From the sequence record MK327931.1: a DNA stretch of 64,000 nucleotides; one strand, given 5' to 3'. Under the pieces are notes generated by a model that saw only the letters and a program-made list of their open reading frames with translations, searched no databases and was not told the origin of the DNA. The translations under genes were made by a program, and so were the position numbers. Numbering within the stretch: position 1 is the stretch's first letter; every line of letters starts with the position of its first letter. Of this stretch, positions 1 to 64,000 are shown one piece after another.

Positions 1-152
1 AGGTTACCCGCCCTTTAGCCCCCTACGCATTTTGCCATAGTCCAATCCCTTTTATTTCAAAAAAGTCAAGGGATTACCTATGCATTTTTTTAACGCATAA
101 TTTTAAAAACGCCTTGACTTTTTTCTGAATCAGTACTAGATCCCTTTACGCA

Positions 153-362
153 TTAATCCTTCGTTACGCTAACGATTATCTGTGTATCCCCGTAGTCCTG
201 CCATACTTCCACGCCATCGGTCGCCCTGGTTAGTCGTGCTGTCATCTGCTTAATGGTCTTAGGCTTTAGTGGAACCTGTTGCAGTACTGTACGCATAGCA
301 TCATTGACGTTATCATGTACGCCTGCAATAGTACCTAGAACGCTGTATACTGTATAGAACAT
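153..362 (-). CDS. hypothetical early protein (69 aa)
   Basis: ORF track; AGGAGG SD upstream. Confidence 0.8.
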   Translation of the reverse strand: MFYTVYSVLGTIAGVHDNVNDAMRTVLQQVPLKPKTIKQMTARLTRATDGVEVWQDYGDTQIIVSVTKD

Positions 363-430
363 ATGTATGCCCTCCTGATATAGTTAAGGCCGCTACAAGG
401 CGGCCTATGATGTTTGGTGATGTGTAACGC

Positions 431-832
431 TTACAGTCCTAAGATAGTGCGTGCTTCGTTACGTTCCGTACACAGCTGCATGATGTGAGCAAGTAAGTCC
501 TTGCTAATGTATCCGGTGTTCATAGCTTCACGAATAGATACATCATACGCACCGAACCCCGTGCGAACGATACGCACATCATTCAGGTTAGTATTATAGA
601 TACCGCCGAGATCAACGGCTTCGAATACTACATCAACAGAATATTCATTGTTGCCATCGTGGAAGTTTTCCAGTGCAATAGTATTGGATACCGCCCAACG
701 TTTGCAGTTTCCAATGATGCGGCACTGTTCCGGTTGGATAGTACCATTACTTACAGCGTACTCCAGTGCATCTTTACCAAAAGTCCGAGCCAGTACTAAA
801 ACGTCAGCGAAGGAATTGATTGAGAAGGTCAT
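431..832 (-). CDS. hypothetical early protein (133 aa, MTFSINSF)
   Basis: start moved to ATG after AAGGAG; own promoter and hairpin at 850-915. Confidence 0.85.
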   Translation of the reverse strand: MTFSINSFADVLVLARTFGKDALEYAVSNGTIQPEQCRIIGNCKRWAVSNTIALENFHDGNNEYSVDVVFEAVDLGGIYNTNLNDVRIVRTGFGAYDVSIREAMNTGYISKDLLAHIMQLCTERNEARTILGL

Positions 833-921
833 GATAAAACTCCTTAATTTAGGAGGGAGAACCATTTCCCCCTCTCTATGTAAAACATTATACTTGATTC
901 TAAGTACTATGCAAGTACTTT

Positions 922-1254
922 TTACATTTTAATACCTGGATTCAGGTAGCGGTGAGATCCATATTCTGGATCGGTTTCGGTCCAGTACTGTAAATCGATA
1001 GTACCTTTCGCGTTAATCTTGTCTACCAGCTTATTCATCTTAGTGTATACTACGTCAGCATCGATGCGTTTAAAGCCAGTAGCTTTAGTGAAGTAGTAGT
1101 GATTTGCTTCACTATCATTAAGGATATACCGAGCACCGTTTGCAGTCTGTGCGATAATGATTGAGTATTCTACTTCCCGATCCAGACCGTCGATGAATAC
1201 AGATGAAACATTGGTACGGATGAAAGCTTTAACGATAGCGATTGAAGTACTCAT
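922..1254 (-). CDS. hypothetical early protein (110 aa)
   Basis: AGGAG SD; own TTGACA-TAATAA/AATAAT promoter. Confidence 0.85.
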   Translation of the reverse strand: MSTSIAIVKAFIRTNVSSVFIDGLDREVEYSIIIAQTANGARYILNDSEANHYYFTKATGFKRIDADVVYTKMNKLVDKINAKGTIDLQYWTETDPEYGSHRYLNPGIKM

Positions 1255-1403
1255 TTTGAATCTCCTAACTTTGTGGGCCGTCGCACCATTGCCGCCCTAC
1301 GAGATACATTATTGCAGTACTGATATACTTTGTCAATACTTTTTTTATTAATAGTTTTCACCCCACCAGCAGATAGTTACTCACCGTTATTAACTATATA
1401 TTT

Positions 1404-1487
1404 TAGATACACTCCTGCACCCAGTGGGCTAGTTTTTGTCTATGCGTATATAATAGCAAAGGGACTGACCGGAGTCAATCCCTTTTT
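1404..1487 (-). ncRNA. promoter-driven two-hairpin RNA module, family A copy 1
   Basis: TTGACT-17-TATTAT then TAG-ACAAAAA-CTA, GCCCACTGGGTGCA-GGAG-TGTATCT; no ORF. Confidence 0.6.
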
Positions 1488-1500
1488 TTATTCTTTTTTG

Positions 1501-1701
1501 TTAGATGATTCTCCAATCTTCTACGATCATGGTAAGATAACGGACCATCGATTCAAGTGATTCGAATTCCCGATAGTCTGCCGCTCCACCAGCGGTACAA
1601 GTACAGCCGATTAAACCATTTTGTAATTCCTTAATCTGTACATCGATAAGGTTGGCTTTAGCTTCTTTCAGTACTTCAACCAGGGCGATAGCGATAGACA
1701 T
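1501..1701 (-). CDS. hypothetical early protein (66 aa)
   Basis: GGAG SD; promoter cassette upstream. Confidence 0.8.
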   Translation of the reverse strand: MSIAIALVEVLKEAKANLIDVQIKELQNGLIGCTCTAGGAADYREFESLESMVRYLTMIVEDWRII

Positions 1702-1790
1702 AATGTTTTACTCCAAACTATTGACGGGAGAACTATTCCCCCGCTCTATGTAAAACATTATACATTACTGGTTAGTACTGTCAAATAGTT

Positions 1791-2048
1791 TTATGAAATA
1801 TCTTCGATGTAGTCGGCCCATTTCATTTTTTCAGTACTGTCAATGGCTACCGGATTATTTGGATCAAACCATTCACCATTCCCGCAATACATACCCACGG
1901 CAACGGTTTTATATCCATCCTGTGCAGTACTCCACGACATAGCACGATAGATATGGCCTTTAACTGGTTGCAATACTGGTAATGTTTTATGGTCTTCTAC
2001 GTAGGCCATAGCTTGAGGATTTACCCGATATTGTGTGAACTGTTCCAT
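1791..2048 (-). CDS. hypothetical early protein (85 aa)
   Basis: SD and own promoter. Confidence 0.8.
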   Translation of the reverse strand: MEQFTQYRVNPQAMAYVEDHKTLPVLQPVKGHIYRAMSWSTAQDGYKTVAVGMYCGNGEWFDPNNPVAIDSTEKMKWADYIEDIS

Positions 2049-2124
2049 TATGTTTCCCCTTGTAGTTAGTAAAGTTATTACATCAGTACTATCAAGCTAT
2101 GTCAATAGTACTGAAATAAAACTT

Positions 2125-2349
2125 TTAGATTAGATTATTGATGCCGTTGATGGTAGACTCGCTTTCTTCTTTCTCCCATTGGCGGTAGTACTTCCATGCT
2201 TCATGATATGTGGCGATTAGTTCATCTTTTTGATCCTGAGTACATGCCAGTACTGAATCACGGTGAGCGGTTTTATAGATAGAATCGAATGATTTCTTCT
2301 CTTCTGCCAGGTTAGCTACTTCCCGCATCAGTTCATCAAAGTTAGCCAT
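2125..2349 (-). CDS. hypothetical early protein (74 aa)
   Basis: AAGGAG SD and promoter cassette. Confidence 0.8.
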   Translation of the reverse strand: MANFDELMREVANLAEEKKSFDSIYKTAHRDSVLACTQDQKDELIATYHEAWKYYRQWEKEESESTINGINNLI

Positions 2350-2416
2350 TTTATTACTCCTTTTAGTGGGGGAGGATATCTCCCCCTATGCAAAACATTA
2401 TACTTTGTTTTAGTTA

Positions 2417-2680
2417 TTATGCAAGTACTTTTTTCATATAAAGATTATATTCTACACCGCCGTAACCTTCTACGATGATATGTTTTGCGTTATCACGTTT
2501 GCACATAGTGAAACCGTTGTTGATGTGTTCTGCATTTTCCAGGGCGACATCACCGATAGCGGCACATACGGCACTAATAACAGTATTCCGCAAAGTACTG
2601 GTATCATTAGCGGTCATAGTAGTTTGCAGTACTACGTTGTCGTATACGTGTGCATTGATAGTGATTTCGATAGTGTTCAT
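2417..2680 (-). CDS. hypothetical early protein (87 aa)
   Basis: CAGGAG SD and promoter cassette. Confidence 0.8.
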   Translation of the reverse strand: MNTIEITINAHVYDNVVLQTTMTANDTSTLRNTVISAVCAAIGDVALENAEHINNGFTMCKRDNAKHIIVEGYGGVEYNLYMKKVLA

Positions 2681-2766
2681 GGTGTATCTCCTGGACTGGC
2701 GGGAGAACTATTCCCCCGCTCTATGTAAAACATTATACGTTAATCTAACTACAATGCAAGTACTTT

Positions 2767-2958
2767 TTAAATTTTATTTCCGATATAGTCCGGTCTATTC
2801 TTTTCGGTCATACGCTTTGCTAATGTTTGCATATGGCTTATTGCGTTTAATGTGTCTTCCTCCAGGGATGAATCAACATAATCAGGATCATTCTTCACCT
2901 TGCAATGATTATGATAGCGTAGTACTGCCAGTACTTTTTTAACTTCTTCTACTGTCAT
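2767..2958 (-). CDS. hypothetical early protein (63 aa)
   Basis: ATGA-type coupling with upstream gene. Confidence 0.75.
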   Translation of the reverse strand: MTVEEVKKVLAVLRYHNHCKVKNDPDYVDSSLEEDTLNAISHMQTLAKRMTEKNRPDYIGNKI

Positions 2959-3227
2959 AATAAGTACCCCACTTCGTTAGCTTTCAGGTTAGTATCAATC
3001 ATCAGTGGATTTTTGTAGTTCACAAAACGATTAGTTTTCTCGATAGCGAATCCCATATAATCCAGCTTACTAACAGTACATTCATTCTTAAAAACTTCTT
3101 TCGCTGCATCGATGGCTGATTGCATGGATAACCGACCATCTAAATTAATGTTTCCAAATGATCCACCAGCAGAAGTAGGATTACCGTTCATATCTTTAAT
3201 GATCATAGTAGCGGAGTAGCTGGACAT
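2955..3227 (-). CDS. hypothetical early protein (90 aa)
   Basis: AAGGA SD and promoter cassette. Confidence 0.8.
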   Translation of the reverse strand: MSSYSATMIIKDMNGNPTSAGGSFGNINLDGRLSMQSAIDAAKEVFKNECTVSKLDYMGFAIEKTNRFVNYKNPLMIDTNLKANEVGYLL

Positions 3228-3314
3228 AATTTTGTTTCCTTTTAGTATCGGGGAGAACTATTCTCCCCTTGATGTAAACTATTATACAGTACTGATATAC
3301 TTTGTCAAATACTT

Positions 3315-4027: not shown

Positions 4028-4150
4028 GATTTTATTCCTTATTACCAGGGAGAACCATTTCCCCCTCTCTATGTAAAACATTATACTTGATTCTAAGTAC
4101 AATGCAAGTACTTTTTATCAAATAGTTTTCAGTACTGAATACTTATATAA

Positions 4151-4240
4151 TAGATACACTTCCGCACCCTATGGGTCAGTGAGTTATCTCTCAATGAATA
4201 TATAATAGCAAAGGGACTGACCGGAGTCAATCCCTTTTTT
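4151..4240 (-). ncRNA. two-hairpin RNA module, family A copy 2
   Basis: TTGACT-17-TATTAT; TGAG-AGATAA-CTCA; CCCATAGGGTGCG-GAAG-TGTATCT. Confidence 0.6.
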
Positions 4241-4248
4241 AATCTTTT

Positions 4249-4833
4249 TTATCGTGTTACCTTACTTGCTTCTACATCACGCTTTTTATAGTACTGATTC
4301 CAGATATTGCGGGTTAAACCGTAATCAAGTACTTTAATAAGGCCATTACGATCCTGGCCGATATTCTGTTTTCTGATATCTCTTATCGTTAGTGTTGATA
4401 ATGTATCATCAACGTGTTGTAGTGCATCAGCAAAGCGGTGCTGGCGTTCAATGGCATTACGTTTAATATTGTACTTTAATTCATTGCACGCGTTTACGTG
4501 CTTTACACTGCCTTTACTTGCAGTACTCAACCGATCCATAACGATAAACATATTATCAGGATCGCATAAATGCATATGCACCTTTGCAAAGTACTGTTTC
4601 AATTGAGGGCGGTCATAATCTAAAAAATTCCATACCTTACATTCAGTTTCATTTTGTTCTACACCCGCATCACAATTCGCGACCTTGATCACTAACCGAT
4701 CATTTAAAGCGAATACAATACGGGAAGAACCCGCACCGATGATCTCCAGACCAGCTAACCGACAAGCTGAAAGGATCTCTTTGTTGGTTTCCATTTCTGA
4801 CAGGGTACGGATGAATTTAGTATAATTACGCAT
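4249..4833 (-). CDS. Ser/Thr protein kinase-like protein (194 aa)
   Basis: IGAGSSRIVF Gly loop, VIKVA, NETE, DIRKQNIG catalytic loop, LDYG; start after AAGGAG. Confidence 0.75.
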   Translation of the reverse strand: MRNYTKFIRTLSEMETNKEILSACRLAGLEIIGAGSSRIVFALNDRLVIKVANCDAGVEQNETECKVWNFLDYDRPQLKQYFAKVHMHLCDPDNMFIVMDRLSTASKGSVKHVNACNELKYNIKRNAIERQHRFADALQHVDDTLSTLTIRDIRKQNIGQDRNGLIKVLDYGLTRNIWNQYYKKRDVEASKVTR

Positions 4834-7424: not shown

Positions 7425-7508
7425 TAGATACATTTATGCACCCTGTGGGCTGATTTGTTTCTATGCGTATATAATAGCAAAGGGACTGACCGGAGTCAAT
7501 CCCTTTTT
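7425..7508 (-). ncRNA. two-hairpin RNA module, family A copy 3
   Basis: TTGACT-17-TATTAT; GCCCACAGGGTGCA-TAAA-TGTATCT. Confidence 0.6.
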
Positions 7509-7517
7509 CAAATATTT

Positions 7518-7667
7518 TTAAACTTCTTTCGGGTTGCGATAGGTGATAGCGTTCGGGTACATTTGTTTAATGTTATTCCATGCCTGGTTAACATTATAAC
7601 CACTTGAGCGAATCAGTTGGTTACTACCGACACCTTGAAACACTACTTCGAATAAGAATTCTTTCAT
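7518..7667 (-). CDS. small hypothetical protein (49 aa, MKEFLFEV)
   Basis: read by hand; GAGGTG SD; coupled to upstream ORF. Confidence 0.7.
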   Translation of the reverse strand: MKEFLFEVVFQGVGSNQLIRSSGYNVNQAWNNIKQMYPNAITYRNPKEV

Positions 7668-8860: not shown

Positions 8861-9118
8861 TTATCTCATAGATCTATGCCAACAATTACGCGGGGGACGT
8901 TTAAAAGTACTATCATGATCCTCCTGGCAAGTTATGCAGTACTTACATCCCTTAACAGCCTGGCGGCGATTCTCAGGGATTTTATCGCCACAGTCGAGGC
9001 AATGTATCAGTGATTCTATTTGTGCGTTAATTTGCTTTCTAGCGTGGTTTACGGCGGCCTGAATCACTGCGTTAATCTCGTCTTGTTCGGCCCCGTCTTT
9101 CGCGAATCCTACAGCCAT
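8861..9118 (-). CDS. TraR/DksA C4-type zinc-finger protein, YbiI-like
   Basis: MAVGFAKDGAEQDEI..., CLDCGDKIPENRRQAVKGCKYCITCQ matches the YbiI/TraR pattern. Confidence 0.9.
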   Translation of the reverse strand: MAVGFAKDGAEQDEINAVIQAAVNHARKQINAQIESLIHCLDCGDKIPENRRQAVKGCKYCITCQEDHDSTFKRPPRNCWHRSMR

Positions 9119-10586: not shown

Positions 10587-10707
10587 GATTTGTTTCCTTA
10601 TTACCAGGGGAAACCGTTTCCCCTTTCGATGTAAAACATTATACGCTTATTGAGATAGTTTGCAAGTACTTTTTAAAAATAGTTTTCAGTACTCAAACAT
10701 TATACAA

Positions 10708-10797
10708 TAGATACACTCCTGCACCCTGTGGGCTAGTGAGCTATCTCTCAATGAATATATAATAGCAAAATGGCTGACCGAAGTCAACCACTTTTTT
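10708..10797 (-). ncRNA. two-hairpin RNA module, family A copy 4
   Basis: TTGACT-17-TATTAT; TGAG-AGATAG-CTCA; GCCCACAGGGTGCA-GGAG-TGTATCT. Confidence 0.6.
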
Positions 10798-10934
10798 CAT
10801 TTATTTTTAGCTTTTAGAATCGCCGCCTTTCGTGTCATTCCTTGTTTGATGTACTCCTTTACTTTCGCTTTTTTAGCGTTTACCTTGTCTGCTTTCGTTT
10901 TAGGAGTACTGTAAATTATACCGTTAGGATTCAT
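10797..10934 (-). CDS. small very basic protein (45 aa)
   Basis: read by hand; MNPNGIIYSTPKTKADKVNAKKAK... Confidence 0.65.
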   Translation of the reverse strand: MNPNGIIYSTPKTKADKVNAKKAKVKEYIKQGMTRKAAILKAKNK

Positions 10935-12686: not shown

Positions 12687-12775
12687 TTTTGTATTCCTTA
12701 AATTAATATGTTGTCTTGATAAAATCTATTATGCCAGTACTATCAAACTATGTCAATAGTACTGTGATAATATTT

Positions 12776-12919: not shown

Positions 12920-13005
12920 TTTAGTTTCCTTGTAGTGGGGAGAACCATTTCTCCCCTTGATGTAATGTATTATACTTTATTCGATTTACTTTGCAAGTAC
13001 TTTTT

Positions 13006-13233
13006 TTAATTTAATTCATCCAGGCAAAGGATACGCTCAACGCCCAAATCAGTTAAACTAATCGACGGCACTTGATAGGTTTCAATGTATGCTACACTTG
13101 CCCACTGACCGAACTCATTAACGGCCCAGGTATTCATTGCATTTTGCAATTCCGCACCTTCCTTGTTGGTAATTACAGCAACAGTAGAAGAATTACCAGT
13201 AGTACCAGATACGCGAGTGATTACGATAGCCAT
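13006..13233 (-). CDS. hypothetical early protein (75 aa)
   Basis: AGGA SD; own promoter. Confidence 0.8.
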   Translation of the reverse strand: MAIVITRVSGTTGNSSTVAVITNKEGAELQNAMNTWAVNEFGQWASVAYIETYQVPSISLTDLGVERILCLDELN

Positions 13234-15535: not shown

Positions 15536-15621
15536 TGTATTTTCCTCATTACCAGGGAGAACCATTTCTCCCCTCTATGTAAACTATTATACAGTACTGA
15601 AAACTAATTGCAAGTACTTTT

Positions 15622-15825
15622 TTAATTTAATTGCTTTAAAACATACTCAAAGACACCACGCACATCATTGATCATCGCCTGGCGGTTAGCAGGTAACGCA
15701 TCAGGATCGCCACTATCCCAGGCATTGATAAAACTCCCCAAATCATGATAGATTTTATTCTGTAAGCCGATTAACTGTAATTCTTTTTCTTCAAGCTCTT
15801 TGATGCGGTCGATTAAATCACTCAT
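15622..15825 (-). CDS. hypothetical early protein (67 aa)
   Basis: start moved to ATG after ACTGAGGATTATCTA, the same leader as the upstream gene. Confidence 0.75.
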   Translation of the reverse strand: MSDLIDRIKELEEKELQLIGLQNKIYHDLGSFINAWDSGDPDALPANRQAMINDVRGVFEYVLKQLN

Positions 15826-17191: not shown

Positions 17192-17259
17192 TTTGTAACC
17201 CTCATTCAGTAGTTGATGTAAGTATTATACGCTTTTAAAAACATTTGTCAAACTATTTT

Positions 17260-17369
17260 ATCAGGGGAGTTTTTCGTGTGCCTTACTCCTGGGCTACTTA
17301 ACGGGAAGTTACTTATTTCGTTCCCCGTCCTGATGTAAAACATTATACGCCTTTAAACATAGTTTGCAA
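17260..17369 (-). ncRNA. promoter-driven 75-nt structured RNA, family B copy 2
   Basis: near-identical to 7272-7346; TAAC/GTTA stem with variable loop; GGAGT-AAGGCACACGAAAA-ACTCC. Confidence 0.6.
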
Positions 17370-17414
17370 GTACTTTTTAAAAATAGTTTTCAGTACTGAA
17401 TATTTAAAAAAGTA

Positions 17415-17488
17415 TTGACAGCATTATCAAGTACTGGCATAATATACCCCATGACAACAGCTAACCCACCGGGTGCACAATTGTAACT
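17415..17488 (+). ncRNA. two-hairpin RNA module, family A copy 6 (plus strand)
   Basis: TTGACA-17-CATAAT; CCCACCGGGTGCA-CAAT-TGTAACT. Confidence 0.55.
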
Positions 17489-17508
17489 ATACTAAACTAC
17501 TTTTTCTA

Positions 17509-17587
17509 TAGATACACTCCCGCACCCTATGGGCTACGGCTTATCTGCCAATGAATACATTATGCCAGTACTGACAAAATAAGTCAA
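17509..17587 (-). ncRNA. two-hairpin RNA module, family A copy 7, convergent with copy 6
   Basis: TTGACT-17-CATAAT; GGC-AGATAA-GCC; GCCCATAGGGTGCG-GGAG-TGTATCT. Confidence 0.6.
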
Positions 17588-17617
17588 TACCGGCAATTGT
17601 AAAGATTTGTAAACTGC

Positions 17618-18983: not shown

Positions 18984-19302
18984 CGTATTAATCTCTTTTA
19001 AAGTGTAGCGGGAAGTGTTCCCGCTCTCGATGTAAAACATTATACGCCTTTAAACATAGTTTGCAAGTACTTTCTACATGTACTTTTAAAATAGTTTTCT
19101 TTCTATATAGGGGAACTATCATTCAGTACTATTATTCAGTACTGAATCAACCAAATCACTACTACACCCCATAAAACGGCCTCAGACGCATTCTAACGCA
19201 TTAATACACCTAAGCTATACATTTGCACCATTCCAATCATTCCAGGGCTTTACGGGCCGTTTAAACGCGTTAAATTATTTTCAATTATTTTGTTTTTAGC
19301 TA

Positions 19303-20933: not shown

Positions 20934-21125
20934 TTACTTCCTATATATAATCATTAAGATATAGTAGTACTGATTATACTGTACATTCTCTTTAATATTA
21001 TAAGGGTCTATAGCAATCTCGGTACATCTATTAAATGCATATCTATTAAATGCCAGTGGAATTATAGATCTAATCCATACTTGTTCATTTTCTTTTAGTT
21101 TACTTATATAGAAGTTTTTATACAT
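20934..21125 (-). CDS. HKEYY-family tandem paralogue (63 aa)
   Basis: MYKNFYI...YYILMIIYRK. Confidence 0.8.
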   Translation of the reverse strand: MYKNFYISKLKENEQVWIRSIIPLAFNRYAFNRCTEIAIDPYNIKENVQYNQYYYILMIIYRK

Positions 21126-21140
21126 AGTATTCTCTATTAA

Positions 21141-21323
21141 TTAATATGATAGTACTAGTGTTAGTACTGAGCACAATTGTTCTTTGTAGTTCTTAGGGTA
21201 TATAGAATCTTTTATGCACTCATTGAAGTGCCATAGGTATAATCTTGGGTCGCATTCTTTATATATTCTTACGGGGACGAATGTTAGTTTTCTTATATAG
21301 AATTCTTTATGTTCTTTATTCAT
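21141..21323 (-). CDS. HKEYY-family tandem paralogue (60 aa)
   Basis: HKEFYI. Confidence 0.8.
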   Translation of the reverse strand: MNKEHKEFYIRKLTFVPVRIYKECDPRLYLWHFNECIKDSIYPKNYKEQLCSVLTLVLSY

Positions 21324-21328
21324 ATTAG

Positions 21329-21514
21329 TTAGTGTCTGTATATAAGTAATAGTAAGAATACGTACTGCACATCTTCATCTTTAGTATTGAGTACTGTACG
21401 TATTGCGTCATGGAACAAGAATATAGTACTTGGGTCATGAAAATTTAAAGGGGTTCTGGGTACGGCATGTTTGTAGTTCCCTTTAACAAATTGTGTGTAG
21501 TATTCTCTATGCAT
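21329..21514 (-). CDS. HKEYY-family tandem paralogue (61 aa)
   Basis: MHREYY...LLLIYRH. Confidence 0.85.
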   Translation of the reverse strand: MHREYYTQFVKGNYKHAVPRTPLNFHDPSTIFLFHDAIRTVLNTKDEDVQYVFLLLLIYRH

Positions 21515-21515
21515 A

Positions 21516-21701
21516 TTAGTACCTATATATTAGGGCGAGAATGTAGTACAATTCATATGGAATGTAATTTGGGGTGATCGCACACTGTGTATGGTAAATG
21601 AATTGTTCGGTATTTTTCTTATCCTTGATATCTATTGGGATTAGTGGTATAAGCATTTGGGAGTTTAGATCCAGATGGCTTAAGTAGAATTCTTTATGCA
21701 T
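21516..21701 (-). CDS. HKEYY-family tandem paralogue (61 aa)
   Basis: MHKEFY...LALIYRY. Confidence 0.85.
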   Translation of the reverse strand: MHKEFYLSHLDLNSQMLIPLIPIDIKDKKNTEQFIYHTQCAITPNYIPYELYYILALIYRY

Positions 21702-21710
21702 ATTGTTCTC

Positions 21711-21899
21711 TTAGAATACGAAAGCTAGGTACAGGGTATGATACAGTACTCGATGGTAGCTGTCAAAATCTAGTATACATGCTTTAGTGCACATAGTAAA
21801 ATACACTTTATCATTTTGTGCATTGATACCGCGAGGTTTATCTAATAGATTAGTTCTGAGGTACATTGGGAAATATTTTGTGTAGTATTCTTTATGCAT
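21711..21899 (-). CDS. HKEYY-family tandem paralogue (62 aa)
   Basis: start moved to MHKEYY. Confidence 0.85.
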   Translation of the reverse strand: MHKEYYTKYFPMYLRTNLLDKPRGINAQNDKVYFTMCTKACILDFDSYHRVLYHTLYLAFVF

Positions 21900-21900
21900 G

Positions 21901-22083
21901 TTAGTACCTGAATATAAGTAGGATAGTGTTATATAGCTGGTCATAACTACTACTATTTTCTATACTTCGTTCTATGCAGTTATTGAATCCCAGTACTGCC
22001 AAATCGTTATCCAGAGGGACTTTATATCTGGCGTAGTGTACAAAAATGCTGGGGAGAAATTGTGTGTAGTATTCTTTGTGCAT
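21901..22083 (-). CDS. HKEYY-family tandem paralogue (60 aa)
   Basis: MHKEYY...LLIFRY. Confidence 0.85.
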   Translation of the reverse strand: MHKEYYTQFLPSIFVHYARYKVPLDNDLAVLGFNNCIERSIENSSSYDQLYNTILLIFRY

Positions 22084-22084
22084 A

Positions 22085-22276
22085 TTAGTACCTATATATT
22101 AGTAAAAGGATGTGATACAGTACTCGATTATAGTCTTCAATATATATCGAGGATTTAGTGCACTGAATGAAGTAGTCTTTTTCGTAGTTTTTTTCTATAC
22201 CCAATGGTTCTGTTGGTACAAGGTGTTGGAGATACATTGGGAGTTTCTCTATGTAGTATTCTTTGTGGTTATTCAT
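22085..22276 (-). CDS. HKEYY-family tandem paralogue (63 aa)
   Basis: MNNHKEYY...LLLIYRY. Confidence 0.85.
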   Translation of the reverse strand: MNNHKEYYIEKLPMYLQHLVPTEPLGIEKNYEKDYFIQCTKSSIYIEDYNRVLYHILLLIYRY

Positions 22277-22277
22277 A

Positions 22278-22460
22278 TTAGTACCTGAATGTTAGCATTA
22301 CTACGTAGTACAGCATATATGGATTATCATCGTATATGAGCGTGTACTTAGTACATTGTTGGAACATTATCTTTGCGTGATCTTTTATTCCTATTGGTTC
22401 TGTTGGTATATGGTGCTGGAGATGCATAGGGATTTTATCCCTGTAGTATTCTTTGTGCAT
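22278..22460 (-). CDS. HKEYY-family tandem paralogue (60 aa)
   Basis: MHKEYY...MLTFRY. Confidence 0.85.
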   Translation of the reverse strand: MHKEYYRDKIPMHLQHHIPTEPIGIKDHAKIMFQQCTKYTLIYDDNPYMLYYVVMLTFRY

Positions 22461-22470
22461 GTTGTTCTCT

Positions 22471-22653
22471 TTAGTACTTATATATTAGGAGTAAAATGTT
22501 ATAGTACTGGTTCATTGCGTCATCATTTTCTATAGCACGTTTTACGCTATTCATGTAGTTAGATCGAGCGGCACGAGTTATGAGAAGAACTTTGTATGCA
22601 GCAAAGTATTTTTGCTGCACGGGTAGTTTAGAGATATAGTATTCTTTATACAT
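22471..22653 (-). CDS. HKEYY-family tandem paralogue (60 aa)
   Basis: start moved to MYKEYY; ends LLLIYKY. Confidence 0.85.
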   Translation of the reverse strand: MYKEYYISKLPVQQKYFAAYKVLLITRAARSNYMNSVKRAIENDDAMNQYYNILLLIYKY

Positions 22654-23317
22654 AGTTTGTAATATACGTAATGAGGTGATGCATTTTCTTATTAGTACTG
22701 ATAATTTCCTGTACATGTTTTGTCAGATTGTACGCGTTTTTATAGAGTACTGGATTATCGATTACAGTACTGTACATGAATAGTTCTTCTTCCTGTAGTT
22801 CTTTGTGTTCTAGTTCTTTGAGGAAATCTACAATTGATTTAGTTTCTTCTGAACGTTGTGCTTGCCAGAAGTGCATATTCTCGTGTACTTTTTCTGCATC
22901 AGTAGAGTATATGCCACCCATTTGGAATTGTGCTGTATTGACATCGTGGGAGGTGTTACAATTCCCGAAGAAGTATGTATTCCCGAAGTATAGCATTAAA
23001 GTGCACGGGGTATTATCCAACTGCATATTGATGATGAAGGATGCGTTCTTTAGTACCTTTGTGCTCGTATTAGTACTCAATACTTTTAAATCAGTATTAT
23101 AGATATTCATATAATGAACAGCTATATTATTTTTCTTCATGTACAATTCAAGGTTCTTTGATACGTTAACTCCATTTGTACTGGATTTTTCCTTTTTATT
23201 TCGTTTCTTTAGTACATTCGGGTGATACGTATATGCAGATGTAACTGATTCTGCCTGAATACTATTGAGGTACTTAAAGTGCTTAAGGTATTGTTTGCTG
23301 TGTGCATTAAGTTTCAT
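22646..23317 (-). CDS. hypothetical protein (223 aa) interrupting the paralogue array
   Basis: ORF track; AAGGA SD. Confidence 0.8.
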   Translation of the reverse strand: MKLNAHSKQYLKHFKYLNSIQAESVTSAYTYHPNVLKKRNKKEKSSTNGVNVSKNLELYMKKNNIAVHYMNIYNTDLKVLSTNTSTKVLKNASFIINMQLDNTPCTLMLYFGNTYFFGNCNTSHDVNTAQFQMGGIYSTDAEKVHENMHFWQAQRSEETKSIVDFLKELEHKELQEEELFMYSTVIDNPVLYKNAYNLTKHVQEIISTNKKMHHLITYITNYV

Positions 23318-23327
23318 TTGGTTTCCT

Positions 23328-23507
23328 TTATATAGATGCCAGGGCGAGGATTTCCCTGTAGGGATTATCTTGTGTTAGTACAGCATAAATGCAGCTATTG
23401 AGATTAATATTTTTAGTACTTTTTGTTCCTAGTTTGTAGTACTTCACGAAGGTGTCGTACATGAAACGGTCTTTTATGGTTATACGTTCTCTATAGAATT
23501 GTTGCAT
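23328..23507 (-). CDS. HKEYY-related paralogue (59 aa, MQQFYRE...YREILALASI)
   Basis: read by hand; AAGGA SD. Confidence 0.75.
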   Translation of the reverse strand: MQQFYRERITIKDRFMYDTFVKYYKLGTKSTKNINLNSCIYAVLTQDNPYREILALASI

Positions 23508-23515
23508 AGTATTCC

Positions 23516-23698
23516 TTAAATAGCGATTAGTTTCATTACTTCTCTGTATGTGTACTTTTCGTTTTGTGCATCTCTTGTGACGACATATAGGAAGGTGTGT
23601 TTATCTTTTTTGTTCCCGCAATTGTAGAAAATATTGAACTTATTGAAGTTGAATCTTTCGGCGTGTTGTAGTTTAGTTAAATAGAATTCTATGTTCAT
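23516..23698 (-). CDS. HKEYY-related paralogue (60 aa)
   Basis: MNIEFYL...YTYREVMKLIAI. Confidence 0.8.
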   Translation of the reverse strand: MNIEFYLTKLQHAERFNFNKFNIFYNCGNKKDKHTFLYVVTRDAQNEKYTYREVMKLIAI

Positions 23699-23706
23699 TT
23701 TCTTCC

Positions 23707-23892
23707 TTACATTTCAATAAGTTTAAGTACTGCTCGGTACGTGTACTTAGTTGTTAGTGCTTCTTTAATAGAAATGCAGAAGTAATGTTGTTTGTCTCTT
23801 ATACTGCCGCGTTTGTAGTACCACACATGGGAGTTGTGACTGTACTTGTCTCTGTCGGATAGTTGTTGGTAGTAGTAGCTTATATGATTCAT
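23707..23892 (-). CDS. HKEYY-related paralogue (61 aa)
   Basis: ...YTYRAVLKLIEM. Confidence 0.8.
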   Translation of the reverse strand: MNHISYYYQQLSDRDKYSHNSHVWYYKRGSIRDKQHYFCISIKEALTTKYTYRAVLKLIEM

Positions 23893-24101
23893 TATAATGT
23901 AATTAGCCTTACTATATTAAAGTACTCGGTCCCTGGTGTACCTTGTAGTATATTACGCACGACATTTTTTTGGTGCTGGATGATTGCTGAAGGTGCGGTT
24001 CTTTTTAGTTTTTTTAAAGTACTGAATTCTTGTTTAAGTATGAACTGTACATCTTTAGGGAGAATATCTATGTAGTACTGATGAATGTTTGTAGTTTTCA
24101 T
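23892..24101 (-). CDS. HKEYY-related paralogue (69 aa)
   Basis: HQYYIDILP...YFNIVRLITL. Confidence 0.8.
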   Translation of the reverse strand: MKTTNIHQYYIDILPKDVQFILKQEFSTLKKLKRTAPSAIIQHQKNVVRNILQGTPGTEYFNIVRLITL

Positions 24102-24111
24102 ATAGCACCTT

Positions 24112-24306
24112 TTAGAACTTAAAGATGAGGTTCAGGATAGAGCGGTACTTAGTTTCAGGGAACTGATGTTCTATTGCATAACGTGTCGCCATCCTGAAAT
24201 CGTAATTGTAATATAGATTATCCTTTCTCATAGGTGGTGCTAAAGAGAATGATAGCTGGTCTTGCTTGTGTAGTTTACTACCATAGAAATCTTTATGATT
24301 ATTCAT
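24112..24306 (-). CDS. HKEYY-related paralogue (64 aa)
   Basis: MNNHKDFY...YRSILNLIFKF. Confidence 0.8.
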   Translation of the reverse strand: MNNHKDFYGSKLHKQDQLSFSLAPPMRKDNLYYNYDFRMATRYAIEHQFPETKYRSILNLIFKF

Positions 24307-24508: not shown

Positions 24509-24509
24509 A

Positions 24510-37897: not shown

Positions 37898-37907
37898 GGA
37901 GAAAATT

Positions 37908-59906: not shown

Positions 59907-60122
59907 TTATTGTATCAAAGATGTATCTATTTGTACAACATTTATTGTAACTATTTCGTACATATAGTCAGGTGCATTGAACTCAGCATACCACTCAATG
60001 ATCTCACAGGCAGCATCAACTTGGTTGTTCGCATTAACACGTCTTGCATAGGTACTAGACATTTTATATCTACCATTTACATACACGTTATATACACCAT
60101 GACACCACCACATCTTAGTCAT
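59907..60122 (-). CDS. hypothetical protein (71 aa)
   Basis: ORF track; overlap coupling. Confidence 0.7.
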   Translation of the reverse strand: MTKMWWCHGVYNVYVNGRYKMSSTYARRVNANNQVDAACEIIEWYAEFNAPDYMYEIVTINVVQIDTSLIQ

Positions 60123-60333
60123 TTATGCTAGGCCATACTTTGTATTGTAAGTTCTGGTATTGAAATTTACCAATTTCATTTTTCTTACGGAATGATTCAT
60201 CTACTTGAATTTCCGCATCGTACTGACCATCAGCCTGTACAACGTACTTAAATTCTTCTACGTGTGAAAAACGTTGACCTTCACCTTCTGGTTTATAGAC
60301 TTGTACTAAACCTTCAACTAGATATAAATTCAT
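60115..60333 (-). CDS. hypothetical protein (72 aa)
   Basis: GAGGA SD. Confidence 0.75.
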   Translation of the reverse strand: MNLYLVEGLVQVYKPEGEGQRFSHVEEFKYVVQADGQYDAEIQVDESFRKKNEIGKFQYQNLQYKVWPSIND

Positions 60334-60336
60334 TTA

Positions 60337-60558
60337 TCATTCCTCATCACTTTCAGTTAGCATAATGCTATGTACAGTTTCCACATAGCGGTGTGTTTTG
60401 GGTGTGTTATACTTTGTAATTTCATCAAACAATTTAAACAGTGCATCTACTTCACTAAGAGCACGAATGAATACATCCATCTTGGTGACTACTCTGGAAA
60501 ACCCGCGTATGTTATTAAATTCAGAGACGTGTTCATACACAACATAGTATCTATTCAT
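60337..60558 (-). CDS. hypothetical protein (73 aa)
   Basis: ATGA coupling. Confidence 0.75.
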   Translation of the reverse strand: MNRYYVVYEHVSEFNNIRGFSRVVTKMDVFIRALSEVDALFKLFDEITKYNTPKTHRYVETVHSIMLTESDEE

Positions 60559-61073
60559 ATATTAAAAAGTTCCATGAATTCATTGAATAAAGAAGTTCTA
60601 ATGCACATAACAAATTCAAAGTCAACATCGATGGTGTCAAGTAGTTTGAACAACTTTGGTACTAATGGATCATTCACCTCAAAGTTATGAATCAAACTTT
60701 GTTGAAACACATTTTCTTCAGTACTATAATCAATAACAAAATATTCAGCAATACCAGGTGGTGTGTAAACATCATATAAAATATGGCGGTGATGATTTGT
60801 TTTAGAACTAGGGGAATATATAAGTTCTATTTCATAAGATTTATCAGCACTGCGTGCGTAACAAACAATATCAGTACTTGTTATTTCTGAACCATCACTT
60901 CTCTCTGAAAAACAAACATCAGCATAGCGTTTTCCAGAGAGATTCAAAAGATCATGAGTTGTTTTACCATAACAGAAATCAGTTTCAATGCGTATCACAT
61001 CTTGATATTCAATTGGTCTTGTATCGCGGCGTTCACGATTAAACACTAATTTCAACAACTCATTAATATCCAT
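60555..61073 (-). CDS. hypothetical protein (172 aa)
   Basis: TAATG coupling. Confidence 0.8.
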   Translation of the reverse strand: MDINELLKLVFNRERRDTRPIEYQDVIRIETDFCYGKTTHDLLNLSGKRYADVCFSERSDGSEITSTDIVCYARSADKSYEIELIYSPSSKTNHHRHILYDVYTPPGIAEYFVIDYSTEENVFQQSLIHNFEVNDPLVPKLFKLLDTIDVDFEFVMCIRTSLFNEFMELFNI

Positions 61074-61273
61074 TACTTAGTCTCAATAACCTTTAGATTT
61101 ACAAAGTCACCTTTAACCTTCATACATTTGTATTCAGTGCGAGTTTCATCACCAGCATCACGAGGCCAATGAGTTGCAGAGTAACACTGATCAGGTGTTT
61201 TATATACACCTTCACCAACGGTGCGAGTGATTTCACCATTAGTTAGTACTACTGCAAGATATAAAGTAAACAT
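61073..61273 (-). CDS. small exported/periplasmic protein with two Cys (66 aa)
   Basis: AAGGA SD. Confidence 0.7.
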   Translation of the reverse strand: MFTLYLAVVLTNGEITRTVGEGVYKTPDQCYSATHWPRDAGDETRTEYKCMKVKGDFVNLKVIETK

Positions 61274-61281
61274 ATTAGTCC

Positions 61282-61428
61282 TTAGAATAATTTATTAATA
61301 ATAATAGCACCCAAACCAAGTACTGCAATAATTGCAGATACCCACATTACCGCGTTCACTGCACCTGTGAGTTCTTTATCAAACTCTCGGCACTTCTTGC
61401 GGTAATCTTCCCACTCTTTGTTATTCAC
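61282..61428 (-). CDS. small C-terminally anchored membrane protein (48 aa)
   Basis: read by hand; AGGAG SD, GTG start overlapping upstream TGA. Confidence 0.7.
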   Translation of the reverse strand: MNNKEWEDYRKKCREFDKELTGAVNAVMWVSAIIAVLGLGAIIINKLF

Positions 61429-61640
61429 ACTACCACTCCTAATAGGTCGGTAGCTTTCTTGAGAACTACATCAATCGTTTCCAGTACTGCACCTTTGTGT
61501 TCAATTGATACAATATTATTATAAGTATCAAGGTCCAAGTACTCCATATATTCTGTTTTGAATACACGAACTTCAGTACTGGTGATTTTAATATCACAAC
61601 CTTTATCCCAAATAACCTGCATCATTTCATTGGTAGTCAT
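61425..61640 (-). CDS. hypothetical protein (71 aa)
   Basis: TAATG coupling. Confidence 0.75.
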   Translation of the reverse strand: MTTNEMMQVIWDKGCDIKITSTEVRVFKTEYMEYLDLDTYNNIVSIEHKGAVLETIDVVLKKATDLLGVVV

Positions 61641-61915
61641 TATTCAACCTTATCATAAACAAGTTTGTGTGTGCTTAGTACTTTGTTGTGATGTCCAGGG
61701 CATTCATATACATACAATCGCTCCTGACGTTTTTCCCAACCACCACAGATACGACCTGATTGTGTACATATTTCATACTCGTTAATAAAAGACTTGCCTG
61801 TGAATGTACAATCCTGACGAACTAAGTCTTTTGCACTAAACCTGCCGTCATCATTACATGCTGTAAGAAACATTGTACAGAATACAAAGACAACTGTCAA
61901 TAGTTTTTTAATCAT
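61640..61915 (-). CDS. putative lipoprotein (91 aa)
   Basis: lipobox LTAC; four further Cys. Confidence 0.8.
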   Translation of the reverse strand: MIKKLLTVVFVFCTMFLTACNDDGRFSAKDLVRQDCTFTGKSFINEYEICTQSGRICGGWEKRQERLYVYECPGHHNKVLSTHKLVYDKVE

Positions 61916-62280
61916 TGAATATCACCCCAACGGAAACCTTTCATATAATTCAAATTCACCTCAACTAGTTCATGTGTTTTTGTACACCAAATGGAGAGAG
62001 TTTTTGTAACATCACCAGGTTCAGATTCATAATTCACACAATAACCTTCAATGCGTAGAGTTTTGTTAGTCCAATGTTCCCACTCAATCCAAATTTCATT
62101 TGGATAATAAACCATATCTTCTTTGAACGTATGGAATTGATCCATTGGTAAATGACCTTTAACTTCAATTACTTCAGCACTTCGAGCCAGTTTTTCAAGC
62201 TTGTACTTTATTTCAGCAAGATATTCTTCATCATTCAGACGAGTGAATAAATCTGTTGCACGGGTTGTATCAAGGCTCAT
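61912..62280 (-). CDS. hypothetical protein (122 aa)
   Basis: GGAG SD; ATGA coupling. Confidence 0.8.
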   Translation of the reverse strand: MSLDTTRATDLFTRLNDEEYLAEIKYKLEKLARSAEVIEVKGHLPMDQFHTFKEDMVYYPNEIWIEWEHWTNKTLRIEGYCVNYESEPGDVTKTLSIWCTKTHELVEVNLNYMKGFRWGDIQ

Positions 62281-62528
62281 TGTTGTACTCCATTAATCAC
62301 TGAAGTGTTGATTCGTGTTTTTCCGCTAGTGTATCCAGTACTGGTGTTTGCATTAGGACAATAAACTGTATACAACGTTGCACCAGCACCTTCCTGTTGC
62401 ATACGATAAATCTTACATCCTGCTTCTTTTAATTCAGTAGGGAGTTCAAAATCACTTGTGCGTTCTTTGGTTGAAGCATCACATGCAGTGAGTAAAAATG
62501 CGACGAGTACTGCTACAATGTATTTCAT
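62277..62528 (-). CDS. putative lipoprotein (83 aa)
   Basis: lipobox LTAC; GGAGG SD. Confidence 0.85.
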   Translation of the reverse strand: MKYIVAVLVAFLLTACDASTKERTSDFELPTELKEAGCKIYRMQQEGAGATLYTVYCPNANTSTGYTSGKTRINTSVINGVQQ

Positions 62529-62836
62529 TAACGAACCTCCACTTCTTGAGAAAGAGCATGAGTCAGTGCATTTGAGTTCGAACCATTCATTTCACGCTGA
62601 CATACAAACATAATGGCATCTTGTACTGAACCTGCGATTTCATACTCACGACCTTCTGGATCAGTTACCAGATGTTCAACGATACAACCACCTCTCAGTA
62701 CAGAAGCACCAGTACTTACACTAATTCTGTAACCTAAGAAATCAAACTGCATACATGCGTCAGTAGGTTTCATCCAATAACCGCTGTTTTGATTCAAATC
62801 GATGATTACAAAACCTTGAGTGTTAGTTTGAAACAT
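62528..62836 (-). CDS. hypothetical protein (102 aa)
   Basis: GAGGA SD; structured leader upstream. Confidence 0.8.
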   Translation of the reverse strand: MFQTNTQGFVIIDLNQNSGYWMKPTDACMQFDFLGYRISVSTGASVLRGGCIVEHLVTDPEGREYEIAGSVQDAIMFVCQREMNGSNSNALTHALSQEVEVR

Positions 62837-62865
62837 AGTTAATTCCTCATTTAATTTAAAAGGGC

Positions 62866-62917
62866 GGGAACGCAGTGACGAGTACGATTATGCTGTCTTT
62901 CCTTTCACTGCATTCCC
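62866..62917 (-). promoter_or_regulatory. 13-bp stem leader hairpin with 26-nt loop
   Basis: GGGAATGCAGTGA pairs with TCACTGCGTTCCC directly after a TTGACA-TATAAT promoter. Confidence 0.65.
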
Positions 62918-62954
62918 TTTGATATAAACATTATACTGCTATTATTCAGTACTG

Positions 62955-63233
62955 TCAATCGATATAAGTACCTTTTTTAACATCACAGACTTCTTCCATC
63001 CAATGTGGATTTTCGTTTTTATCAGTGAAGATTTGTTCTGCTTCTTCTTTTGTTTCAGCTAGGACAATACGATCCCCTTCATCCAAATCACGGATACGAT
63101 ACACTTTCAGTTCTTGTTTCTTCTCAAGGATATTACACAGTTCACGTGCTTTTTCTTCATCGCACTTCCCTTCATTAGCATAAAACCAAATTGCTTTTTT
63201 AATAAGGTCACGTTCTTCTTTAGAAAAAGACAT
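62955..63233 (-). CDS. hypothetical protein (92 aa)
   Basis: start moved to MSFSKE after AGGA; own promoter. Confidence 0.75.
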   Translation of the reverse strand: MSFSKEERDLIKKAIWFYANEGKCDEEKARELCNILEKKQELKVYRIRDLDEGDRIVLAETKEEAEQIFTDKNENPHWMEEVCDVKKGTYID

Positions 63234-63403
63234 AATATTTCCTATCATTTGTTAAAGTGGATTTCGTTTGATATAAACATTATACAGTACTGATATCTTC
63301 TGTCAAGTATTAATCACCAAAAATCATCATATACCCAAAGCAAGCAACACAGATGACTAAAACTAACAATACCAACGATAGCCTCTAACATCATTTTATA
63401 TCC

Positions 63404-63604
63404 TTAATCGATAATTTTATATTCACGATGACCATAGAAGCCAGCTTCAAGGATGCGATTACCATCAGCATCTTCCAAGTCCCAACCACGGGATGTTTCG
63501 GCAATAATAGTCATGATGTGACCTCTTGGGAAAATTCCACTCAGAGTGGATACATCCTCAAGTAATTGAACTTTCTTTCCAACATTGGAATTCGGTTTAA
63601 ACAT
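63404..63604 (-). CDS. hypothetical protein (66 aa)
   Basis: start moved to MFKPN after AAGGG. Confidence 0.75.
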   Translation of the reverse strand: MFKPNSNVGKKVQLLEDVSTLSGIFPRGHIMTIIAETSRGWDLEDADGNRILEAGFYGHREYKIID

Positions 63605-63614
63605 TTTATGGCCC

Positions 63615-63797
63615 TTATTCATTGATCACATCAAGTACTTTGTCCAGCTTTTTACCAATACTTTCCTTTGGTTTCTCACCATTCTGGAATACATTAGTAC
63701 TGCAATACTCAGGACGCGTATTAGGAAACTTCTCGTTCATCCAGGAGTGACCGTAAACACCCAGCATGATGCCAACGATAAGAATGATAATTTGCAT
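63615..63797 (-). CDS. small N-anchored membrane protein (60 aa)
   Basis: GAGGA SD; hydrophobic N-terminus. Confidence 0.75.
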   Translation of the reverse strand: MQIIILIVGIMLGVYGHSWMNEKFPNTRPEYCSTNVFQNGEKPKESIGKKLDKVLDVINE

Positions 63798-63812
63798 GAT
63801 AATTTCCTCTGA

Positions 63813-64000
63813 TTAAATGTTAGTAGTATAGTACTTGATTTCGTTTTGAATTGCAAGTTCTATTTGTTTATTGAAAAGAATTCCAAACTCTTTAATTGAT
63901 TCACAATCGAATTCAATAGAAAAAGTATACTCTGGTACACGTACATTGTCAATACCCAAATACTCTTTTATGTAAATTTTAATGAGTTTACATAGTGCAG
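63813..64000 (-). CDS. partial hypothetical protein running in from beyond the window
   Basis: open frame ...LCKLIKIYIKEYLG...KYYTTNI*. Confidence 0.65.
   Translation of the reverse strand, partial: ALCKLIKIYIKEYLGIDNVRVPEYTFSIEFDCESIKEFGILFNKQIELAIQNEIKYYTTNI

Follow-up and report, generated by a model that had tools for sequence, protein, structure and literature searches.

The closest described counterparts of the element reported here are short words repeated through a genome. The highly iterated palindrome HIP1 (GCGATCGC) of cyanobacteria is an exact short palindrome, present in about an order-of-magnitude excess in coding sequences (all frames) and in noncoding DNA, clade-wide and at conserved sites. 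Chi (GCTGGTGG), the DNA uptake and uptake signal sequences (DUS/USS) and the FtsK-orienting polar sequences (KOPS) are exact short words enriched in their own DNA, which they can mark as self versus non-self; they are asymmetric and polar, and are read by RecBCD, ComP and FtsK. Cluster A mycobacteriophages (L5, Bxb1) carry dozens of copies of one repressor site, the stoperator, across their genomes, and TF1 of SPO1 and p6 of phi29 are phage genome-coating proteins that also repress early promoters. We analysed 64,000 bp of sequence record MK327931.1 (the window), in which an earlier note had singled out the palindrome AGTACT, and found that this exact word is over-represented 9- to 12-fold across the genome of the phage, in every reading frame and in noncoding DNA. 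Because the excess survives corrections for composition, reflects a uniform pressure at synonymous positions, extends over six or more genera and is conserved where the amino acids do not change, these results support the view that AGTACT is a genome-wide functional mark and no compositional accident.

MK327931.1 is the 370,817-bp genome of Escherichia phage vB_EcoM_G17 (G17; genus Asteriusvirus), and the window corresponds exactly to its positions 1–64000; the sequence of Sharanji phage matches that of the window at 99.9% (megablast, 6 kb). G17 carries a direct terminal repeat of 20,668 bp (bases 1–20668 equal 350150–370817, with 0 mismatches). The first third of the window is the left copy of this repeat, an early-gene block of about 55 small minus-strand genes, most of which have their own sigma70-like promoter and many of which have terminators. 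This arrangement is that of a host-takeover module, as in SPO1 or T5. Gene locations in the window were taken from the GenBank table of coding sequences (CDS); outside the window, open reading frames (ORFs) were defined by a simple longest-ORF rule. The unique genome designates the approximately 350 kb of G17 in which the terminal repeat is counted once.

The window contains 282 AGTACT, about one per 227 bp, compared with 20.6 ± 4.4 in dinucleotide-preserving shuffles (maximum 33). The enrichment is larger than first stated in the earlier note, whose hand counts (22 in bases 1–3000, 16 in bases 60001–64000) were exact. AGTACT is the most frequent hexamer both in the window and in the whole G17 genome; it occurs 902 times in the unique genome, compared with about 100 expected from a first-order Markov model, and 1,034 times in the full 371-kb genome. 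Markov expectations for the window rise with the order of the model (21.8, 48, 107 and 229 for orders 1–4). The order-4 model is built from the pentamers of AGTACT itself and thus absorbs most of the signal, yet the maximal-order z-score of AGTACT (9.0) was still the highest among hexamers. Within the CDS of the window, 180 copies were observed, compared with 24.7 ± 4.7 after shuffling codon order and 55.8 ± 6.3 after shuffling synonymous codons inside each gene; in all ORFs of the unique genome, 707 copies were observed and 207.5 ± 11 expected after synonymous shuffling (z = 45). A large excess under three codon-level nulls and under Markov orders 1–4 rules out a codon or dinucleotide artefact, which was the first refutation named in the earlier note.

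The pressure towards AGTACT is visible in the proteins themselves. Ser-Thr dipeptides, about half of which are encoded by AGT-ACT, number 157 compared with 87 expected, and Val-Leu dipeptides 157 compared with 102, so that protein sequences are skewed towards the word. The proportion of Ser-Thr dipeptides encoded by AGT-ACT is 52–62% in the terminal repeat, in the genes at 40–110 kb, in the replication and structural core of 130 kb and in the right arm, and 34% in the 20–40 kb stretch, compared with 12–17% predicted from codon usage. The synonymous-level pressure is broadly uniform over early, middle and structural genes. Site density is not: it amounts to 6.4 per kb in the terminal repeat (132 sites), 2.5–3 in the arms and 1.7 in the core, and since the synonymous pressure is broadly uniform, this gradient mostly reflects the freedom of each sequence to vary. 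In the window, 180 sites lie fully inside genes (3.4 per kb), where they are evenly spread along gene length and fall in all three reading frames (77/42/61), as the earlier note had it; 99 sites are fully noncoding (9.0 per kb) and three more span a gene edge. A higher density in noncoding DNA is expected if only other constraints limit the number of sites.

AGTACT was enriched 5- to 23-fold in every RaK2/GAP32/121Q-like jumbo phage of Enterobacterales that was sampled, most of them over 20–50 kb only. The ratio of observed to expected copies was 10.9 in RaK2, 8.4 in GAP32, 7.8 in 121Q, 7.3 in Serratia phage BF, 5.4 in Salmonella phage Munch and 5.3 in an Erwinia-like contig of 366 kb; CBB had 96 copies compared with 12.3 expected. 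In the whole genome of Klebsiella phage OU509535, 945 copies were found where 80 were expected, and AGTACT was the top hexamer there too. Outside this group the ratio was 0.3–2: Pseudomonas phage PA5oct, whose terminase is 43% identical, had 3 copies compared with 11.7 expected, and nine metagenomic contigs (terminase identity 43–45%) gave 0.5–2 fold. The trait therefore belongs to the RaK2/GAP32/121Q-like clade.

To measure the conservation of individual sites, 15 orthologous genes (15 kb) of six genera were aligned by codon; the pairwise comparisons share phylogeny. G17 coding sites were kept in another genus in 35–60% of cases, compared with 17–20% for any hexamer; where the amino acids were unchanged, AGTACT was retained in 67–86% of cases and any hexamer in 32–38%. 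AGTACT is thus conserved at synonymous positions, the second property on which, according to the earlier note, its functional role could have foundered. Among 91 site positions, 45 were occupied in one genus only and five in all six. Retention above background together with lineage-specific positions indicates both purifying selection and turnover.

These properties make AGTACT an analogue of HIP1, and the comparison drawn in the earlier note is apt as far as the phenomenon is concerned: an exact palindrome is in about 10-fold excess after correction for composition, it is present beyond codon usage in all coding frames and in noncoding DNA, and it is found with conserved sites in eight relatives from at least six genera. 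It is not HIP1 itself, nor does it share the known overlap of that element with methyltransferase targets. AGTACT is a different and shorter word (6 bp) with an AT-rich core, it is denser than HIP1 (2.6–6.4 sites per kb), and it has no evident cognate methyltransferase; HIP1 belongs to a cellular genome, whereas AGTACT is found in lytic jumbo phages, where palindromes are normally purged.

The anatomy of the site indicates how it may be read. The flanks of AGTACT carry information only at positions −1 and +1, with C at −1 and G at +1 in 46% of sites each, and G at −1 and C at +1 in 8% each. Perfect palindromic forms of 12–14 bp exist at the places given in the earlier note (ATTCAGTACTGAAT at 19134; TTCAGTACTGAA at 4128, 15269, 17389 and 19603) and also at 17687 and 19135 for the latter; the 14-bp palindrome ATTCAGTACTGAAT (19134–19147) is noncoding and lies near the inner end of the terminal repeat. 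These extended forms are scarce (14 and 2 in the genome). Exact AGTACT is 9.0-fold over-represented and one-mismatch variants only 1.2- to 2.2-fold, with similar values for both orientations on coding strands (AGTACA 1.19, TGTACT 1.30). The transition neighbours AGTGCT and AGCACT are raised about 1.5-fold, and the sole low neighbour, AGGACT/AGTCCT (0.54), is a transversion away. Because flanks and one-mismatch variants are symmetric, the reading of AGTACT is symmetric as well as sharp, which also makes a motif acting at the RNA level unlikely. Pairs of sites 16–25 bp apart are enriched (42 compared with 28.5 expected) and pairs 6–15 bp apart are depleted; overall, sites in G17 are spaced somewhat more regularly than random (coefficient of variation, CV, 0.77–0.89). 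Our preferred, still tentative, interpretation is that AGTACT is a selected, genome-wide self tag, which would be read on duplex DNA by a candidate clade-specific, probably phage-encoded protein of two-fold symmetry.

Words of this kind can also accumulate without selection, by biased repair or gene conversion, for instance by very-short-patch repair with a site-specific enzyme, as proposed for HIP1. A pressure that is uniform over all gene classes, the turnover of sites with many lineage-specific positions and the 1.5-fold level of the two transition neighbours are all compatible with such a process. However, it should deplete a donor word, and the only word that is low differs from AGTACT by a transversion; amino acid sequences are shifted as well as codons; there is a deficit of pairs separated by less than 16 bp, and G17 sites are under-dispersed in their spacing. 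In addition, a different word, confined to one strand, takes the place of AGTACT at equal density in one block of the genome (described below), and a mutational bias common to the whole genome would not have this result. We consider a non-adaptive origin improbable.

The host differs sharply from the phage in its content of AGTACT. Two 50-kb pieces of the E. coli K-12 chromosome (100 kb in total) contain six copies, or 0.06 per kb, which is about 43 times sparser than in the phage and about 100 times sparser than in the terminal repeat; by extrapolation from this 100-kb sample, the whole chromosome would hold a few hundred. A second compositional trait accompanies the first. GCGC is wholly absent from the G17 unique genome (0 compared with 179 expected) and from all sampled relatives that are rich in AGTACT, among them the Klebsiella RaK2-like phage over its whole genome (0 compared with 131), whereas it occurs at a normal level in PA5oct (43 compared with 43) and at about 7 per kb in E. 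coli. The two traits thus co-occur. This absence suggests a GCGC-specific nuclease, either encoded by the phages or widespread in their hosts. Other palindromes are scarce too: the window lacks 22 of the 64 possible palindromic hexamers (GGATCC, CTGCAG, CCATGG and GCATGC among them), and GGTACC and CGTACG are missing from the whole G17 genome. Such scarcity is the classic outcome of restriction avoidance and argues against hypermodified DNA. Neither the enrichment of AGTACT nor the absence of GCGC is reported in the papers on Sharanji, RaK2 and CBB, in a 2026 review of jumbo phages or in the texts returned by full-text searches, all restricted to open-access sources, so that an earlier report is possible.

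AGTACT is identical to a restriction-modification target, the recognition sequence of ScaI and Eco255I, and an exact 6-bp palindrome with little information in its flanks and barely enriched neighbours has the signature of a type II site. An orphan phage methyltransferase might modify it, in which case methylated AGTACT would be an epigenetic self mark that protects from ScaI/Eco255I-type restriction, or tells apart phage and host DNA, or DNA before and after replication. Abundant AGTACT, if unprotected, is conspicuous in a genome purged of other palindromes (GCGC, GGTACC and CGTACG genome-wide), and cyanobacterial HIP1 overlaps methyltransferase targets. The most likely enzyme would be G17_00508, a Dam-family adenine methyltransferase (PF05869). 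However, characterised PF05869 enzymes act on GATC, and members of this family, common in unrelated phages, share just 42% identity inside the clade, so that the family does not track the AGTACT trait. The DNA of RaK2 was reported to resist many restriction enzymes (PMC3622015), a property compatible with methylation, and CpG methylation was reported for this phage. The latter fits the similarity of a second enzyme, the C5 DNA methyltransferase G17_00216 (286 aa; G17 91405–92265, minus strand), to animal DNMT3A/B/C: it aligns over its full length with their catalytic domains (E = 2e-23), better than with the bacterial enzymes M.HhaI or M.HaeIII. AGTACT contains no CpG, and this DNMT3-like protein, from a clade reported to methylate CpG, was ruled out as its reader. 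These two enzymes were the only methyltransferases found, and the literature searched contained no methylome data. Methylation alone gives no reason for a tenfold multiplication of sites, and we regard it as an unlikely explanation of the trait.

One region of G17 departs from the rule. Between 334,743 and 342,463, outside the window, a 7.7-kb block of about 20 small minus-strand genes contains no AGTACT and 41 TGTACT, all on the plus strand; the reverse word is absent. The coding strand of the block thus reads AGTACA, in all three frames (14/14/11) and at three times the codon-shuffled expectation (z = 8.6). The same block is present in phages ECO103 4-12-1 and TH47, with most positions kept, and the occurrence of one pattern in two independently sequenced genomes, 96% and 86% identical, rules out a sequencing artefact. 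Neither the block nor homologues of its genes were found in Klebsiella phage OU509535. A second, weaker block lies at 345.3–349.5 kb, with AGTACA on the plus strand, in an array of paralogues, and is partly due to common descent. The strand exclusivity of TGTACT resembles the strict orientation of stoperators. No explanation considered in this work accounts for the block, which hints at a directional action of the reader.

Directional reading is a property of Chi. AGTACT might be a bidirectional Chi-like signal that tames a processive helicase-nuclease, such as one that could be formed by the annotated RecD-like helicase G17_00263 and Cas4/PD-(D/E)XK-like nuclease G17_00277, so that GCGC-bearing host DNA would be degraded and the linear DNA of the phage spared. 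Chi itself is an over-represented exact short self word, and AGTACT is likewise over-represented relative to foreign DNA, with 2.6–6.4 copies per kb compared with 0.06 in the E. coli sample. All clade members combine enrichment of AGTACT with absence of GCGC, and outgroups show neither trait; sites are densest at the genome ends, and the strand-exclusive block suggests that the signal can be read directionally. Furthermore, the terminal repeat contains nine copies of CCACCAGC (0.18 expected), which is the E. coli Chi octamer oriented so as to act on RecBCD that enters from the left end of the genome (window positions 1363, 1586, 3163, 5062, 7411, 8679, 9392, 13594 and 20064), and a single copy of the opposite orientation, GCTGGTGG (20076). 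The G17 terminal repeat is demonstrably under selection against nucleases entering at the ends. Some of these octamers belong to terminator hairpins. On the other side, known Chi sequences are asymmetric and strand-biased, whereas AGTACT is a palindrome, its variants are symmetric and only the 334.7–342.5 kb region is polar. The density gradient is equally well explained by protein constraint, the synonymous pressure being uniform; both the nuclease activity and a GCGC-specific enzyme are putative; and one site per 160–600 bp is far above any known Chi density. A Chi-like role is quite unlikely.

AGTACT is also found in the early promoters, in their spacers or near the −35, as the earlier note emphasized. 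About 42 of the 99 noncoding sites stand at fixed offsets in sigma70-like early promoters (TATAAT at +7 or +27 from the site, TTGAC/TTGCA at −15, +5 or −5 from it), the TATAAT offset of +7 being shared by 16 of them, and at least one AGTACT is present in 39 of the 44 intergenic spacers of 40 bp or more in the first 19 kb. Three arrangements, all on the minus strand, illustrate the placement. In class A promoters, TTGACA-N9-AGTACT-G-TATAAT, the site fills the spacer beside the −10 (3228–3314, site 3288–3293); in class B promoters, AA-AGTACT-TGCAT...TATAAT, it abuts and overlaps the −35, TTGCAT (2681–2766, site 2759–2764); in a promoter at 1702–1790 with the sequence TTGAC-AGTACT, it overlaps the −35 hexamer (site 1774–1779). 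The class B context GCAAGTACTTTT occurs in 13 copies, all within the terminal repeat. Promoter sites of the repeat are often paired, 20–24 bp apart: at 12736–12763, two sites separated by 22 bp surround a promoter, one just upstream of the −35 and the other beside the −10, and at 4107–4136 two sites separated by 24 bp, TTCAGTACTGAA and AAAAGTACTTGCA, lie upstream of an early promoter.

These promoters derive from an early-promoter cassette of 63–100 nt that is repeated 24 times on the minus strand between 868 and 19108 (for example at 12950–13012 and 15541–15635) and consists of a −35, a spacer, GTATAAT, a conserved TTTACAT start region, a 5′-untranslated hairpin GGGGAGAA...TTCTCCCC and a ribosome-binding site. 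Its conserved 5′ hairpin could make early mRNAs more stable. Because the approximately 40 promoter copies of AGTACT all come from this one cassette, they are not independent events, and they may merely fill unconstrained promoter positions. An artefact due to a repeat family thus accounts for these copies and not for the coding sites, whose contexts are unique.

If AGTACT were only an operator or promoter element of early genes, with incidental copies in coding sequences, the fixed −35/−10 positions and the frequency of sites in early spacers would be readily explained. However, 64% of the window sites are genic, the 180 coding copies show no association with TATAAT or TTGAC, and structural and replication genes share the synonymous bias of early genes. 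A constant distance to −10 and −35 elements, as expected of a sigma70 element, is a property of the approximately 42 noncoding copies and not of most copies. The emphasis of the earlier note on promoters was therefore misleading, the placement being real and restricted to a minority of sites from one cassette, and a promoter-only role was rejected as very improbable on the basis of coding-site context, uniform synonymous bias and the genome-wide excess in ORFs. The same figures separate AGTACT from stoperators, with which it shares the repetition of one site across a phage genome. Stoperators are asymmetric 13-bp sites, about 30 per genome, intergenic and oriented with transcription in temperate phages, whereas the approximately 900 AGTACT of this lytic phage are mostly palindromic and mostly genic.

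Terminators contain the word as well. An array of RCC1-like (beta-propeller) paralogues on the plus strand (25040–39077) holds 29 coding sites (2.2 per kb) and eight noncoding ones, and the hairpins of its terminators, GCCAGTACT...AGTACTGGC, are made from the motif, in agreement with the earlier note. Examples, both on the plus strand, are the hairpin GCCAGTACT..TACTGGC at 26183–26201 (site at 26186) and the intrinsic terminator GCCAGTACTCAGTACTGGC at 33508–33526, which has two sites with overlapping arms (33511 and 33518). The array comprises 12 paralogues, most of which are trailed by their own AGTACT-based terminator. DUS/USS likewise form inverted pairs in terminators. In the tightly packed small genes that follow on the minus strand (39535–63797), 74 coding sites (3.3 per kb) are present without promoter context.

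To our knowledge, SlmA is the only host factor with an AGTACT-containing site. A resemblance to LexA and TrpR half-sites was dropped, as the 18-bp spacing needed was not seen and an AGTACT palindrome is not what forms the TrpR operator. The E. coli binding sites of SlmA, a nucleoid-occlusion factor, (GTGAGTACTCAC) are palindromes with an AGTACT core, and the phage sites might be decoys or docking sites for an Enterobacterales host protein such as this one. Every enriched phage infects Enterobacterales, the Pseudomonas relative PA5oct not being enriched, and a hijack of SlmA would explain why Sharanji infection leads to filamentation, with phage DNA spread through the cell and no known division inhibitor found (PMC11895373). 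However, binding of SlmA requires G1, T2 and a purine at position 3 on both sides of an AG(T/C) core, A4 and G5 being needed as well (PMC3020112), whereas phage sites favour C (46%) and avoid G (8%) at position 3; in 350 kb there are only two copies of GT.AGTACT.AC and none of the full consensus. Despite the filamentation caused by Sharanji, SlmA hijack was rejected because the flanks that SlmA needs are absent or avoided, and host decoys appear highly improbable.

We return to the self tag read by a dedicated two-fold-symmetric protein. The earlier note proposed a mark for a DNA-binding protein, methylase, packaging factor or recombination system; the mark is supported, and this list of agents is too broad to be confirmed. 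In the model that we propose, the contrast in density between phage and host would concentrate a dimeric reader on phage DNA, where the bound protein would mark, organise or protect this DNA with no base modification involved. In the terminal repeat, where sites overlap −35 and −10 elements, the same binding might shut off or time early transcription, as TF1 does on SPO1. The logic would be that of TF1 and p6, and SPO1 resembles G17 in its architecture, in which a long terminal repeat is filled with strong early promoters and with small genes for host takeover. Neither protein reads an exact hexamer: TF1 binds DNA that contains hydroxymethyluracil, and p6 responds to the shape of DNA. No homologue of them turned up in this analysis. 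Unlike Chi, DUS/USS and KOPS, AGTACT is palindromic and unpolarised save in the 7.7-kb block, and its reader is putative. To assay binding of such a reader, CAGTACTG is the form of AGTACT to use, with CAGTTCTG and CTGTACTG as contrast sequences.

Several observations weigh against a dedicated symmetric reader. A palindrome of strictly 6 bp, with hardly any information in its flanks past ±1, resembles the site of a type II restriction or modification enzyme more than a typical operator of 14–20 bp. The even spacing is moderate in G17 and was not reproduced in the Klebsiella phage (CV 0.89–1.10). A symmetric reader of duplex DNA does not predict the strand-exclusive TGTACT half-variants. The possibility that promoter sites are passengers of the cassette in unconstrained positions weakens the regulatory part of the model. 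Finally, Pfam scans of 20 of the approximately 660 G17 proteins gave no protein with a plausible AGTACT specificity.

Other features of these genomes were recorded. Five long intergenic spacers of the window (1404–1498, 4156–4250, 7425–7519, 10670–10807 and 17192–17617) share one conserved element, composed of a terminator hairpin GGGATTGACTCCGGTCAGTCCC with a TTGACT −35 box inside it, followed by TATTAT and by a short conserved hairpin CCCACnGGGTGC. This element could encode a small RNA; an Rfam scan of the window gave no match, the shared element included. The terminal repeat encodes, on the minus strand (8861–9118), an 85-aa protein of the DksA/TraR type with a C4 zinc finger, which is a candidate for modulating the host RNA polymerase. 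The terminal repeats are bordered on their inner sides by two long arrays of back-to-back paralogues (about 60–80 codons each), at 20934–24937 in the window (minus strand) and at 343.9–350.0 kb of G17. In GAP32, BF and Munch, AGCAGC, CAGCAG and GCAGCA are 6- to 8-fold over-represented around the terminase gene, probably because of repeats in the coding sequence; CAGCAG, in addition, is recognised by EcoP15I.

AGTACT richness and GCGC absence may be linked, and we put forward, as a rather unlikely idea, that together they are the two halves of a self/non-self code for which no base modification is required. A phage nuclease would destroy host DNA, which bears about 7 GCGC per kb when the phage has none, and protection, organisation or activation of the phage genome would fall to a second factor that reads AGTACT; the TGTACT block, confined to one strand, would be a directional dialect of the same signal. 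If true, this code would be the counterpart, in composition, of the chemical strategy of T4, which is based on hydroxymethylcytosine.

Phages are textbook avoiders of short palindromes. The presence, in a genome that purges palindromes, of one that is enriched tenfold, conserved and clade-wide points to a DNA-reading system that has not been described. A dedicated reader, should there be one, would explain by what means large phages tell their own genome from that of the host when their DNA is unmodified, and it would provide a handle on host takeover in a little-understood group of phages that are therapeutic candidates and infect E. coli, Klebsiella, Salmonella, Cronobacter, Serratia and Erwinia. 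These phages would then also offer a tractable system in which to study HIP1 and other iterated palindromes, a long-standing puzzle.

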